From Leucoraja erinacea (taxonomy: Eukaryota): a DNA stretch of 51,362 nt. Numbering within the stretch: position 1 is the stretch's first letter; the number at the start of each line of letters is the position of its first letter. The notes under the pieces are model-generated. The model ran no database searches, had not been told where the DNA came from, and saw nothing but the letters and a program-made list of their open reading frames with translations. The translations under genes were made by a program, and so were the position numbers. Location: positions 186,001 through 237,362 of the forward strand of contig NW_026576056.1 of NCBI RefSeq assembly GCF_028641065.1, in the 5' to 3' direction. Positions 30 to 45,594 of this stretch are shown here, in pieces.

Positions 30-81
30 TTGGTTGCACCTTGAGTTCAGTCCCAGCGCCGAATGTTAATTTTTCTCTTTG
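30..81 (-). CDS. TCR J gene segment (J-delta-like), QREKLTFGAGTELKVQP
   Basis: FGXGT motif; phase-1 donor GTGAGT (29-24) immediately after; 12-RSS immediately before. Confidence 0.9.
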
Positions 82-109
82 CACTACATTAAACCCCCAC
101 CACAAAACC
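82..109 (-). other. 12-RSS of J at 30-81
   Basis: Read on the + strand: CACTACA (82-88), 12 bp, CACAAAACC (101-109). The essential CAC is intact; the rest is partly degenerate. Confidence 0.75.
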
Positions 110-295
110 TATTCCAAAGCAGAGACTCATAACGCCAGTGTCATGAAGGCCCCAGAGCCACGTTGCATCCAATATGAAACAATGTATGAAGATCATAGCA
201 GGAAAGGTCAATATAAGCGATTAGTTTTCATTCGCTACATACATCACAATTCAGAGACGAATCAGCATGGATATCAAAGGGAAAATGGTGATGTG

Positions 296-1566
296 GTGAG
301 AGTGGTGAATCTCTGGAACTCTCTGCCACAGAGGGTAGTGGAGGCCACAGTTCATTGGCTATATTTAAGAGAGAGTTAGATGTGGCCCTTGTGGCTAAAG
401 GGATCAGGGGGTATGGAGAGATACTGAGTTGGATGATCTGCCATGATCATATTGAATGGCGGTGCAGGCTCGAAGGGCCGAATGGCCTACTCCTGCACCT
501 AATTTCTATGTTTCTACGTTTCTATGAAAGCTGTTGGAAAGCGGTTTAGGAGATTGAGGGGGGATCTTATAGAAACTTCTTAAGGGGTTGCACAGGCTAG
601 ATGCAGGAAGATTATTCCCGATGTTGTGGAAGTCCAGAACAAGGGGTCACAGTTTAAGGATAAAGGGGAAATCTTTTAGGACTGAGATGAGAAAAACATT
701 TTTCACTCAGAGAGTGGTGAATATCTGGAATTCTCTGCCACAGAATGTAGTTGAGGCCAGTTCATTGGCTATATTTAAGAGGGAGTTAGATGTGGCCCTT
801 GCGGCTAAAGGGATCAGGGGGTATGGAGAGAAGGCAGGTACAGGATACTCAGTTGGATGATCAGCCATGATCATATTGAATGGCGGTGCAGGATCGAAGG
901 GCCGAATGGCCTACTCCTGCACCTATTTTCTACGTTTCTATGTTTCTATGGTAGTTTCTTTCCAATGAAATACCTCAACCTTCCATAAACCTCGCACTTG
1001 TCAGTGGAACTAGGGACATCCTAGTCCTATAATTATGGTTCTGAGCGAAGCAGCTACGTTCAAGGAAGATTGTGCGAGGCAGTGTCGTATTTTGCAAAAG
1101 CAATCCCCACATTTCAGTATGAATTCTTAAAGTCTTGGTTTATACTCTCTAGAATTTAGGAGATTGAGAGGGGATCTTATAGAAACTTACAAAATTCTTA
1201 AGGGGTTGGACAGGCTAGATGCAGGAAGATTGTTCCCGATGTTGGGGAAGTCCAGGACAAGGGGTCACAGCTTAAGGATAAGGGGGAAATCCTTTAAAAC
1301 CGAGATGAGAAGAACTTTTTCCACACAGAGAGTGGTGAATCTCTGGAACTCACTGCCACAGAGGGTAGTTGAGGCCAGTTCATTGGCTATATTTAAGAGG
1401 GAGTTAGATGTGGCCCTTGTGGCTAAGGGGATCAGGGGGTATGGAGAGAAGGCAGGTACGGGATACTGAGTTGGATGATCAGCTATGATCATATTGAATG
1501 GCGGTGCAGGCTCGAAGGGCCAAATGGCCTACTCCTGCACCTAATTTCTATGTTTCTATGTTTCTA
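296..1566 (+). mobile_element. Three 5'-truncated CR1-clade LINE 3' ends (approx. 296-527, 545-949, 1134-1566), family A
   Basis: RGDLIETYK..TRGHSL..FFTQRVVNLWNSLP C-terminal ORF2 motif; (TTTCTATG)n tails. Confidence 0.9.
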
Positions 1567-2404
1567 ACTGAATAATGCATCACTGTAGCAAGCAAACTAC
1601 TGTAAAAAAAGACAAATTTGCAGAACCAGAACGATAATTTGTGAACTGGTGCCCAACATTGTCGGATTTTAGTATTCAGTAGGACTTCGAGACAACTTGC
1701 ATTAAACAATCACCCACAATTTTCAACTTCATTAGAAGCAACATGTTTAAATGCCATTTCTTTGTGCATTTGATCCAACGAGAGCAGACCAGAAACAAAA
1801 ACGTTCAGGCTGACCGAATGAGGGTCCCGACCCGAACCGTAGTCTGTCTACTGATACTACCTGACTGGCCGAATTACCCTAGCACTTTGCGTTTTGCTCA
1901 AAACTTCAACAGTTACAGCTCCTTGCGTCTCCAGGGTTTGCTCTGATCACCTTCAGTTTACTGTTGCCAATGTATCATATGCAGAGAGGGCAGCCCGGTT
2001 CTTGACGGGTTAATAACTGCAATGCTATGCAACGGCTTGGAAGAAGGTGGAAGGGACTACGGGCAATCTGCTGTTTCATGAATTGGGCGTTTGGGATGTA
2101 TTTCTAAATTGCCATCCATGCTTTAGTTTACTTGTTGGTCAAACGTCACTCGACTGTACATGTAAATGTAGTTGAAGACCTGCATTAGAAAACATCCCAC
2201 GACATTCACCGAACCAACTTGACTCGGTAACCAGGAGACTGGGACGATGTACTCGGCTCCCCGGCGATACCTCCCAACCCCCACTCCCGTGCTCAACTCT
2301 TCTTCATCCAAACAAGTACGACTGGTCAAATACCCGATCGATGATGCTGCGTGGTCCCACTTTCATTAAATAACAGACGGGTGTGTTGAAGGTTAAATAC
2401 TTAC

Positions 2405-2471
2405 TCGGTTCAACGAACAGTGTTGTTCCTTCCCCAAAAGTGAGCTTGGCACCACTCCTGTTGCATTCAGT
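2405..2471 (-). pseudogene. TCR J segment (TECNRSGAKLTFGEGTTLFVEP) with no recognisable RSS; ORF/pseudo-J
   Basis: KLTFGEGT motif; phase-1 donor GTAAGT at 2404-2399; no CAC heptamer plus A-rich nonamer at 12-bp spacing upstream. The 5' boundary is approximate. Confidence 0.75.
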
Positions 2472-2716
2472 TTAAGTAGATCGGTCCGGATTCCATCCAC
2501 ATCTCCCGGTAACCGTGTGTGTTGCTTTCTCCATGATAAGACTAGTCTGGGAAGAGAGTTTATCTCTACCATCATGCGATTCCTGTGCGCTCGCAGACAA
2601 CGAATGGTTAAAAAACCCCCAAAATAAACGTTAAATGGAACTTTAAGTCTAATGTTGGTAATACCGCTGAATATGAACCAAGTTACCGACTGGAAGGCGA
2701 GGCTCTGCAGTGGAGA

Positions 2717-2794
2717 GGTTAATGTATGGCGGCTGATAGCACTTGTATTACTGTGCGTATCCCACCCACGGTGTTACAAAGCAATACAAAAACC
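2717..2794 (-). other. TCR D-delta segment D2 (core 2756-2766, GGTGGGATACG on the minus strand) with 5' 12-RSS and 3' 23-RSS
   Basis: + strand: GGTTAATGT (2717-2725), 23 bp, TACTGTG (2749-2755), D core, CACGGTG (2767-2773), 12 bp, ACAAAAACC (2786-2794). All three frames open. Confidence 0.93.
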
Positions 2795-3107
2795 TCCACC
2801 TCGCTGCTGACCGCAACATCGCGTGACGGAACGCTCCACTGCGCAGTGCATTGAACGGAGAGAAACTTCCCAGAACCTTTAACTTGAGCGACGGGCAAAG
2901 TAACCAGACGCTAAACCGCGCGAGAGGGGGATGCGACCAATGGGCGGAGGAGGCAAGGAAGCTTACATCCGGCGGAAGTGTTTCAGCATTGGGGAAAAAA
3001 CCCCACATCAATGTCCAGGCAGCCGGAACAGTGCGGAGCGAAAACAAGAGAACACGTTCTTCTAAACTCGCAGATTAGGTCGCCGCAGTGGGACAGCCCC
3101 TTTAAGT

Positions 3108-43839: not shown

Positions 43840-43893
43840 GTTGGGTCAGATGTACAAGGAAGTCAATTGGATGGCAAATGGACGATGTAACGG
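43840..43893 (+). CDS. Probable C exon 2 (connecting peptide with interchain Cys), GWVRCTRKSIGWQMDDVT
   Basis: Long T-rich tract and TAG acceptor, GTAAAT donor, 54 nt, phase 1/1, single Cys. The true exon could instead lie in the N gaps at 44254-44850. Confidence 0.6.
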
Positions 43894-44019
43894 GTAAATA
43901 TTTCGGGCACGACATGCCAAATATAGAATGTTTTATGGTGGAAATGGCAGAGAGGAATGAACAATGGAATGCACGAATAGAAATATCAAGGGACGAAGTG
44001 CTGACGGGCATCTGCATGT

Positions 44020-44097
44020 GTGGATGTGTGGATGGGTGGATGGGTGGATGGGTGGATGGGTGGATGGGTGGATGGATGGGTGGATGGGTGGATGGGT
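44020..44097 (+). repeat. (GGAT/GGGT)n microsatellite
   Basis: Direct reading. Confidence 0.9.
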
Positions 44098-44878
44098 TCA
44101 TAGATACCGAAGATGGGGTGAAGGGTATATAGAAAGCCAAAGACATAGAGAAACACAGATGGATAAGTAGCAAGATGGGCAGACAACGGCATGGCTGTGT
44201 AGATAGATGGACAGATTGGCGGACATACAGCTTGAAATACTCCGACAGAGAGGNNNNNNNNNNNNNNNNNNNNNNNNNNNNNNNNNNNNNNNNNNNNNNN
44301 NNNNNNNNNNNNNNNNNNNNNNNNNNNNNNNNNNNNNNNNNNNNNNNNNNNNNNNNNNNNNNNNNNNNNNNNNNNNNNNNNNNNNNNNNNNNNNNNNNNN
44401 NNNNNNNNNNNNNNNNNNNNNNNNNNNNNNNNNNNNNNNNNNNNAAATAAGCAGGCAAATAAGTAGATACATAACGCAAGAAANNNNNNNNNNNNNNNNN
44501 NNNNNNNNNNNNNNNNNNNNNNNNNNNNNNNNNNNNNNNNNNNNNNNNNNNNNNNNNNNNNNNNNNNNNNNNNNNNNNNNNNNNNNNNNNNNNNNNNNNN
44601 NNNNNNNNNNNNNNNNNNNNNNNNNNNNNNNNNNNNNNNNNNNNNNNNNNNNNNNNNNNNNNNNNNNNNNNNNNNNNNNNNNNNNNNNNNNNNNNNNNNN
44701 NNNNNNNNNNNNNNNNNNNNNNNNNNNNNNNNNNNNNNNNNNNNNNNNNNNNNNNNNNNNNNNNNNNNNNNNNNNNNNNNNNNNNNNNNNNNNNNNNNNN
44801 NNNNNNNNNNNNNNNNNNNNNNNNNNNNNNNNNNNNNNNNNNNNNNNNNNAACGAAGAAAGGTAGAGAAGAAGAAACA

Positions 44879-44910
<32 letters not shown>

Positions 44911-44950
44911 TCTAAGGTTAATTTAGGACTATTTTTTTCCATTATTACAG

Positions 44951-45060
44951 AGGTATCAAAGGTGAATTTCATCTCTTTGACGTTGATGGCATTGAGGGTC
45001 CTCCTGTTTAAGAGCATTGCGTTCAATGTCCTGATGACGGCTTGTGTCTGGATGATTTAA
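44951..45060 (+). CDS. TRDC: C transmembrane/cytoplasmic exon EVSKVNFISLTLMALRVLLFKSIAFNVLMTACVWMI*
   Basis: TTACAG acceptor. TCR alpha/delta TM signature with Arg and Lys (LRVLLFKS..FNVLMT). Stop at 45058-45060 followed by a GTGAGG donor, implying a separate 3'UTR exon as in TRAC/TRDC. Confidence 0.93.
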
Positions 45061-45594
45061 GGTGAGGCTGGTTCACTCAAATTGGCACATGGAAAGACAT
45101 CGTGTGGTCGCTGGTCATGTCCGTTAAAACGGTGCAACCAATATCTCTCGACCGTCCATGTCGTTTCTCTCCGCTGGTCCTCCAGCTCCGACCACGTCGT
45201 GAAGTTAGTCCTGAATTATTTAGGTTTTTAAACGTTTGCCCGCGGGAAAGCTGCTCGTCTCCCTCAGTACACATGCCACTGGTTTATATTCTGCCGTTGT
45301 ATAATGATTTCTTAACGTCCTCTGGCCATTTTGGACCTCCACCACATACAATTTCCATATCGTTCTGAAACGTGTCTATATGTGGAACCTGTCTACTTGA
45401 TCTCCATGTCTTTGTTTTATAAAAATCAATTTTCATTGATTCCAACCGTTCTGTGGCATTGTGTTTGAATTACTTGCTTTTAGTCTAGGTAGGATCCACC
45501 CAGCAGAACAGTACTACTTAGATGCATTACAACAGAAAACGGAAATCCCTGTGTGGCTGTAACCTTGCTATAGTAGATTGACAACAACAAGAAG

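Follow-up and report, generated by a model that had tools for sequence, protein, structure and literature searches.

A probable T-cell receptor delta region of the little skate with two units of opposite orientation and a putative divergent constant gene

Organization of the locus

We analysed the antigen-receptor elements in a stretch of 51,362 nucleotides from the little skate, Leucoraja erinacea (NCBI RefSeq assembly GCF_028641065.1, contig NW_026576056.1, positions 186,001 to 237,362 of the forward strand). This whole stretch is called the window, and all positions below are counted from its first letter. Ten antigen-receptor parts, comprising variable (V), diversity (D), joining (J) and constant (C) elements, lie between repeats in the window. 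Four runs of N (14647-15119, 24836-25182, 44254-44444 and 44484-44850) interrupt it, and key receptor parts are set apart by three of these four gaps. Database searches were run exon by exon, with the N runs left as N. An earlier note on this DNA had described two cassettes placed back to back, J-J-D-D-V running leftward and V-V-J-C running rightward, and as a matter of anatomy this description was borne out. The parts that it had assigned to the minus strand (V1, D1, D2 and two J segments) were all located by scans for recombination signal sequences (RSS) and for J motifs together with reading of the sequence. When nine delta-type proteins were compared with the window by tblastn, no further V or C was found and C-like sequence appeared on the plus strand only, so that, as had been claimed, the minus-strand donors do face away from the single C of the window.

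V1 (exon 11725-11428; 11388-11725 with its RSS), the V nearest the D segments, is an antibody-heavy-chain-like V on the minus strand with an open frame and a 23-type RSS, the heptamer of which occupies 11427-11421. It matches the Pfam V-set family (4.2e-12), and none of the 60 PDB matches listed for it was named as a T-cell receptor (TCR), the names being those of antibody heavy chains, nanobodies and single-chain variable fragment (scFv) constructs. To its left on the same strand lie D2 (3919-3998), with a core of 13 nt at 3970-3958 between a 5' 12-RSS (3998-3971) and a 3' 23-RSS (3957-3919) that both have consensus heptamers, and D1 (2717-2794), with a core of 11 nt at 2766-2756 between a 12-RSS (2794-2767) and a 23-RSS (2755-2717). 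This arrangement of signals, 12-RSS on the 5' side and 23-RSS on the 3' side, is of the delta/beta type. D1 and D2 are tandem paralogues, matching at 74% over 117 nt and at 89% over 89 nt. Two J segments complete the unit. J(-)2 (2452-2405, minus strand) has an FGEG motif and a donor GT at 2404-2403, and J(-)1 (81-30, minus strand) is a delta-type J with an FGAG motif, a donor GT at 29-28 and a 12-RSS at 109-82 with a weak heptamer. The splice donors of both are of phase 1 and aim at the left edge of the window. The minus-strand unit thus shows the make-up of a TCR delta D-J region, with D segments of the 12/23 kind, a V with a 23-RSS and J segments with 12-RSSs, that of J(-)2 being degenerate. 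The signal of J(-)2 (2453-2480) agrees with consensus at only 3 of 7 heptamer and 3 of 9 nonamer positions, which counts against this assignment, and the J(-)2 peptide was absent from all 30 proteins compared. With its intact FGEG core and good donor, J(-)2 may be a dead J or may be used via a non-consensus signal.

On the plus strand, V2 (exon 23748-24032; 23748-24071 with its 23-RSS) is a V of the TCR alpha/delta type (Pfam V-set, 3.8e-6). Its 60 listed PDB matches comprised 50 TCR chains (49 alpha or alpha-beta and one delta), eight antibody constructs and two entries with ambiguous names. V3 (exon 36876-37180) is again antibody-heavy-chain-like, with a V-set match at 7.4e-9 and an RSS with a 22-nt spacer at 37181-37218; antibody-type names made up its PDB matches, none of the 60 listed being named as a TCR. 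By their PDB neighbours, V1 and V3 are antibody-like and V2 is TCR-like. Since V3 is the V nearest the plus-strand J, the further observation that an antibody-like V is the most proximal V of each cassette also stood. The protein database searches returned no chain bearing V1 or V3. The plus-strand J, J(+) (39184-39249; 39156-39249 with its RSS), has a 12-RSS at 39156-39183 with a heptamer of 7/7 and a nonamer of 8/9. It is followed by exon 1 of a constant gene, which we call C' (41534-41842, plus strand), and, beyond the last two gaps, by a C' transmembrane exon (44951-45061, plus strand).

An RSS scan of the whole window at a summed score of at least 13 gave seven sites, six of which are those of the named segments. 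Paired 12/23 signals around cores of 11-13 nt, of which there are two sets, are far above chance expectation. A six-frame scan of the window for J motifs found only the three J segments and one chance match that has no donor.

A D-type signal and flank on the plus-strand J

The earlier note had proposed that D was lost on the right-hand side. No D with paired RSSs was found in a scan between V3 and J(+), and to that extent the proposal holds, but the signal and flank carried by J(+) favour fusion of a D over its loss. The alignment of J(+) with the 5' sides of D1 and D2 takes in its nonamer, spacer and heptamer and a minimum of 17 bases of 5' flank. The comparison of 39156-39215 with 3971-4015 and 2767-2810 (minus strand) gave local scores of 40 and 45, against 15 +/- 2.2 for shuffled sequence, and none of 500 shuffles reached the observed scores. 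Among 1316 tiles of the window, both D regions were the best non-self matches of the J(+) RSS and flank, whereas the flanks of J(-)1 and J(-)2 resemble neither J(+) nor the D segments. In addition, J(+) has 32 nt of coding sequence ahead of its F codon, compared with 18 and 14 nt in the minus-strand J segments, an excess of 14-18 nt.

Because J(+) combines a D-type RSS and flank with a longer coding part, D-J fusion is the simplest reading. J(+) would then be a germline D-to-J joint that keeps the 12-RSS of the D, the D being fused rather than lost. Two observations temper this reading. The 11 nt that follow the J(+) heptamer agree with D1 at 6 of 11 positions only, which weighs against fusion, and the alignment of the three J segments permits histories other than D-J fusion. 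On the sequence comparisons we consider the chances of a fused D to be about even. In the antibody genes of sharks and skates, germline joining is attributed to RAG activity in germ cells. Germline-joined immunoglobulin genes in these fishes are the subject of the passages concerned in Lee et al. (2000; PMC2193156) and Anderson et al. (1995; PMC2192082); they are like the proposed J(+) fusion in that a joining step has been removed and differ from it in being antibody genes. No D-J fusion in a TCR delta-type unit turned up in the literature searched, and such a fusion would extend germline joining from the antibody genes of sharks to T-cell receptors.

Use of minus-strand segments with a C-delta outside the window

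The orientation of the minus-strand donors had led to the prediction of a second C to the left of position 1. This prediction is supported indirectly but well by P0023, a V-D-J-C chain of 293 aa. This protein was predicted from a contig, 1216 bases long, in a public assembly of reads. P0023 is the sole other member of the 90% cluster of P0009, the protein named by NCBI 'T cell receptor delta constant [Leucoraja erinacea]'. The J(-)1 translation recurs in P0023 without a mismatch, at 17 of 17 residues from the first germline codon, and the third complementarity-determining region (CDR3) of the protein has DWGT, which corresponds to the second reading frame of D2. The order in the protein is DWGT, two more residues, the full J, a lysine at the splice and then the canonical C-delta, and its constant part is identical to that of P0009 at 152 of 156 residues. 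When P0009 and P0023 were compared with the window by tblastn they matched at C' only, with 32-33% identity, which places the canonical C-delta outside the window. A search with the constant part of P0023 returned only P0009 and P0007.

P0023 indicates that D2 and J(-)1, either those of the window or those of a near-identical locus, are in use and are joined by splicing to an off-window C-delta, which probably lies immediately to the left of the window. This use of D2 and J(-)1 is seen in one transcript-derived protein, and a point that counts against our reading is that P0023, which differs from P0009 at 4 of 156 constant residues, may derive from a sister species or represent another copy of C-delta. 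P0009 itself begins in a third J, of the FGGG type, that was not found in the window, which fits a J closer to C-delta, further to the left. The first six C-exon residues account for three of the four constant-region differences between P0023 and P0009, whose J segments also differ. The two C-delta sequences may represent alleles, sister species or two near-identical copies of C-delta.

A divergent delta-type constant gene on the plus strand

C' exon 1 encodes a delta-type C1-set domain (Pfam C1-set match, 1.6e-5), and its phase-1 acceptor and its donor fit the J. In a phmmer search of 1.84 billion representative sequences it gave 21 matches at E<=0.001, with shark chains at the top. Identity was highest with a sevengill shark model (52%) and reached 45% with sawshark and houndshark models; a catshark model that combines an antibody-like V with this type of constant domain shares 42%. 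Proteins named by NCBI 'T cell receptor delta constant' gave 37% identity for stingray and 34% for little skate. Two shark models among the matches, P0004 and P0006, have two V domains in tandem and can be read as of the NAR-TCR type. The transmembrane exon encodes a helix with an arginine and a lysine five residues apart (R-x4-K), of the alpha/delta type, followed by a stop codon and then by a donor to an exon of the 3' untranslated region (UTR). In tblastn comparisons this exon matched the transmembrane portions of eight delta-type proteins at 51-72% identity. Among 15 elasmobranch delta constants, 12 columns are invariant and 20 nearly so; C' conserves all of the former and 18 of the latter.

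These features bear on the question of whether C' is instead a TCR alpha constant gene or the constant part of an immunoglobulin light-chain cluster. In favour of these alternatives, a V-J-C order that has no free D is the layout of both shark light-chain clusters and TCR alpha. Two results point the same way and count against a delta assignment: in the PDB taken alone, antibody lambda constant domains were the top matches of C' exon 1 and none of the 60 matches listed was a TCR, and the automatic NCBI names of the three nearest shark proteins are of the form 'alpha chain ...-like'. We take these labels to be misnomers. Exon 1 of C' has C-L-L-S-E-F-F-P, which corresponds to the trd signature CLxxxFxP, and the tra signature CLxTD is absent; both signatures are those given in the methods of Giorgetti et al. 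(2023). Furthermore, an alpha locus fits poorly with the single J upstream of C' and with the lack of a J array in the 6.3 kb downstream, up to the end of the window. The canonical place of a delta constant is 5' of a J-alpha array and C-alpha, and in these 6.3 kb no J of any kind was found. The relatives of C' include the two double-V shark models and the TRDC-named proteins. Taken together, the R-x4-K helix, the elasmobranch delta-type relatives, the CLxxxFxP signature and the conserved columns overturn the light-chain reading, the transmembrane exon by itself excluding it, and we consider either alternative highly improbable. By its sequence, C' is best described as a divergent delta-type constant gene.

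C' has company among NCBI models of sharks, which include two delta-type constants on one sevengill shark contig and, in the starry smooth-hound, six that each lie on a contig of their own. Most of these models (P0001, P0024, P0004 and P0025-P0029) bear the name 'alpha chain MC.7.G5-like'. Elasmobranchs may commonly have multiple delta constants, which are apparently misnamed. A search with the constant part of P0001 returned ten shark proteins and no batoid protein.

Taking both strands together, we read the window as probably part of the TCR delta region of the little skate, in which the canonical D-J part runs leftward and a divergent delta-type unit runs rightward.

Integrity of the plus-strand unit

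A rival to this reading holds that only the canonical unit works, the right-hand one being a relic in decay, a pseudo-cassette that is not expressed. Several of the results in its favour also count against a working C' chain. Neither of two protein searches returned a transcript-derived or annotated C' protein: the phmmer search gave no protein above 52% identity to C' exon 1, and a word search with exon 1, which covers proteins of 56-178 aa, gave no candidate. An exact look-up of the ATG-started open reading frames of the window found 0 of 10 on record. A connecting-peptide exon with an interchain cysteine was sought with a profile of 16 homologues and was not found in the readable part of 41843-44253, so this exon may sit in the N runs or be missing. 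Likewise, the search for leader exons of V1, V2 and V3 gave weak candidates only, none of which was identified with confidence.

The state of the exons themselves argues against decay. V2, V3, J(+), C' exon 1 and the transmembrane exon all have intact frames and matching splice phases; the splice from C' exon 1 to the transmembrane exon is in frame even without a connecting-peptide exon. The RSS of J(+) is near consensus, and the full retention of invariant constant-region residues noted above also speaks against a relic. Comparison of V1 with V3 shows identity at 45 of 97 residues, with pS 0.62 (synonymous sites near saturation) and an omega of 0.36. Finally, two independent runs contain parts of C' exon 1 (shares 0.39 and 0.25), which proves only that the DNA or RNA exists. 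On balance we regard a relic as possible but somewhat doubtful, and we tentatively suppose that C' is expressed.

Adjacency and orientation of the two units

On the assembly as given, we infer that the two halves are truly adjacent and lie head to head. An in-place flip of the contig 1-14646 was considered and rejected. After such a flip the donor of J(-)1 would face the gap of 473 bases, an estimated length, and then V2, which leaves no room for C-delta; the flip is excluded because P0023 shows J(-)1 using C-delta. Once it is excluded, the remaining options are the layout as assembled and a misplaced contig.

In the latter case the layout would be a scaffolding artefact, with contig 1-14646 misplaced, an alternative-haplotype piece or a chimeric join, and the two units would not be real neighbours. 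The division of key parts by three of the four gaps makes room for such an error. The flanks of all four gaps showed no overlap in either orientation, and neither these flanks nor self-comparison of the window provide internal evidence that ties contig 1 to the remainder. A precedent is the newt TRD locus, where two haplotype assemblies differ on this very point, and the passage concerned has its authors warning of the disagreement (PMC12698447). Against an artefact, all the parts belong to one kind of locus, which makes a random misjoin unlikely, and C' exon 1 and the transmembrane exon agree in order and strand although they lie on different contigs; the exclusion of the simple flip removes a further variant. 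Overall, we consider a scaffolding artefact rather unlikely and retain the head-to-head layout.

Proposed working of the two units

The general scheme of TCR delta genes is that a V bearing a 23-RSS joins a D of the 12/23 kind, which joins a J with a 12-RSS. The left-hand unit would follow this scheme: the 23-RSS of V1 would be joined to a D, and the D to the 12-RSS of a J, with D-D joining as an option. The left J exon would then be spliced to the canonical C-delta, which the assembly would place to the left on the minus strand. In the right-hand unit, V2 or V3, whose signals are of the 23 type, would be joined in a single step to J(+) at its 12-RSS, after which the V-J(+) product would be spliced to C', the phases being compatible. 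That a single joining step would be needed follows from the resemblance of J(+) to a germline-fused D-J. Given the divergent orientation of the units, a V of one unit could be joined to the D or J of the other through inversion alone, in the manner of the inverted V genes of other loci; along the scaffold, the V3 RSS and the 5' D2 RSS point in the same direction.

It is conceivable that the right-hand unit encodes an expressed extra delta-type TCR chain of the skate, with inversional exchange of V segments, as the cartilaginous-fish equivalent of the second C-delta that frogs and birds have. We give this extended reading a low probability. If it were true, the chains would mostly carry an antibody-like V on a constant domain about equally far from the C-delta of skate and that of sharks, and they would be made by one-step joining of V to a DJ that RAG had fused in the germline.

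Duplication history

The note had also postulated an ancient inverted duplication. This idea stands in so far as homologous parts recur in the two units, namely V1 and V3, the D flank and the J(+) flank, and C' and the C-delta type, but non-coding inverted homology is lacking and the split cannot be dated. V1 and V3 are old paralogues, and C' has about a third of its residues in common with the canonical C-delta. Self-BLAST of the window showed no long inverted homology; there were short low-copy inverted pairs with no shared axis, and V1/V3 accounted for 64 nt. Trees were built from exon 1 only (12 and 19 rows, about 100 columns), with a pig lambda constant domain on a very long branch as outgroup. 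They place C' outside the shark group and leave its position relative to the skate C-delta unsettled: in the approximately unbiased (AU) test, neither C' with the skate C-delta (p 0.43) nor a single batoid clade (p 0.39) was rejected. An old duplication of a V-D-J-C unit seems a reasonable interpretation of these sequences; the trees cannot date the split of C' from C-delta.

Comparison with known delta loci

A layout similar to that of the skate is found in Xenopus tropicalis. As described in the passages on frogs in Parra and colleagues (Mol Biol Evol 2012; PMC3457774), its TCR alpha/delta locus has two C-delta genes with their own joining segments, and VH-delta genes, which are V genes of antibody type, stand beside one D-J-C-delta cluster that is inverted relative to the rest. 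The skate differs in having an antibody-like proximal V in both units, in having one unit with no free D, and in that C' has only about a third of the residues of the canonical C-delta. In the model given there (PMC3457774), the D-J-C-delta duplication took place 'early in tetrapods, or earlier', and VH genes were inserted beside one of the copies, which in frogs became inverted. If the skate unit were an expressed counterpart, either the duplication proposed by Parra would predate the split of cartilaginous from bony fish or the convergence would be striking.

In chicken and turkey the second delta locus is unlinked. The passages on these birds (PMC3457774) describe a small VH-delta-(D)-J-C-delta unit that is separate from the principal delta gene and resembles the skate unit; it lies on another chromosome and has D segments, whereas the skate unit is within about 12 kb of V1 on the scaffold. 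The newt Pleurodeles waltl, as far as the passages on its TRD clusters go (Front Immunol 2025; PMC12698447), is like the skate layout as assembled in having two adjacent TRDC-J-V clusters of opposite orientation, and like the proposed J(+) fusion in having a pre-joined germline segment. According to those passages, both clusters lack D genes and VH-delta is absent, the pre-joined element is V-J and not D-J, and the two newt C genes differ mainly in their 3' UTRs, unlike the two constants of the skate. For mammals, the passage on platypus (PMC3457774) has an inverted V located 3' of C-delta that is used by inversion, as may be the case in the skate; there a lone V is inverted, and in the skate it is an entire V-J-C unit.

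Antibody-like V genes within an elasmobranch delta locus have a precedent in the nurse shark, where the passage concerned of PMC12227049, naming Deiss et al. (2019), has TAILV, a TCR-delta-associated Ig-heavy-chain-like V. In the catshark model P0005, likewise, an antibody-like V is joined to a delta constant; this V shows 36% identity to each of V1 and V3. In the literature searched, supplements excluded, no second C-delta and no head-to-head delta units were described in cartilaginous fish, which is not proof that none has been published. The skate layout adds to a known, frog- and newt-like kind of arrangement, in a lineage for which that literature held no description. Extra delta constants together with antibody-like V genes have been proposed as raw material for unusual receptors such as TCR-mu, and have been described mainly in tetrapods. 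A skate case beside a canonical delta gene would bear on the age of the duplication and on the exchange of parts between antibodies and T-cell receptors. Furthermore, studies of the skate repertoire would miss the C' chain because C' appears to be absent from protein databases.

Repeats and low-complexity sequence in the window

Repeats derived from long interspersed nuclear elements (LINEs) crowd the window, and one family has about 35 copies. An open retroelement frame at 26133-27071 (minus strand) encodes a reverse transcriptase (RVT_1, 1.6e-10), and the 3' end of its family recurs about 35 times in the window. A second open retroelement frame, at 9113-9679 (plus strand), has a zf-RVT match under the Pfam cut-off. 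The tail of the commonest LINE-derived repeat of the window lies 30-200 bases 5' of each V exon and in the orientation of the V, at 11790-11864 (minus strand), 23454-23542 (plus strand) and 36755-36850 (plus strand). Co-duplication of V1 and V3 by way of these tails was considered and dropped, each tail being nearer to other copies (91-92% and 84-85%) and a mutual match being absent. The tails ahead of the three V exons are independent insertions, and between tail and V exon no leader exon was found.

Two palindromic stretches were noted near C'. One, of 398 nt and 72% self-complementary, lies in the intron between J(+) and C' at 39413-39790, and the other, of 91 nt and 92% self-complementary, lies 3' of C' exon 1 at 43594-43684. 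Simple repeats occur at the borders of the gaps, with a GGATGGGT-type run near 44020-44095 and a GA run near 44885-44910.

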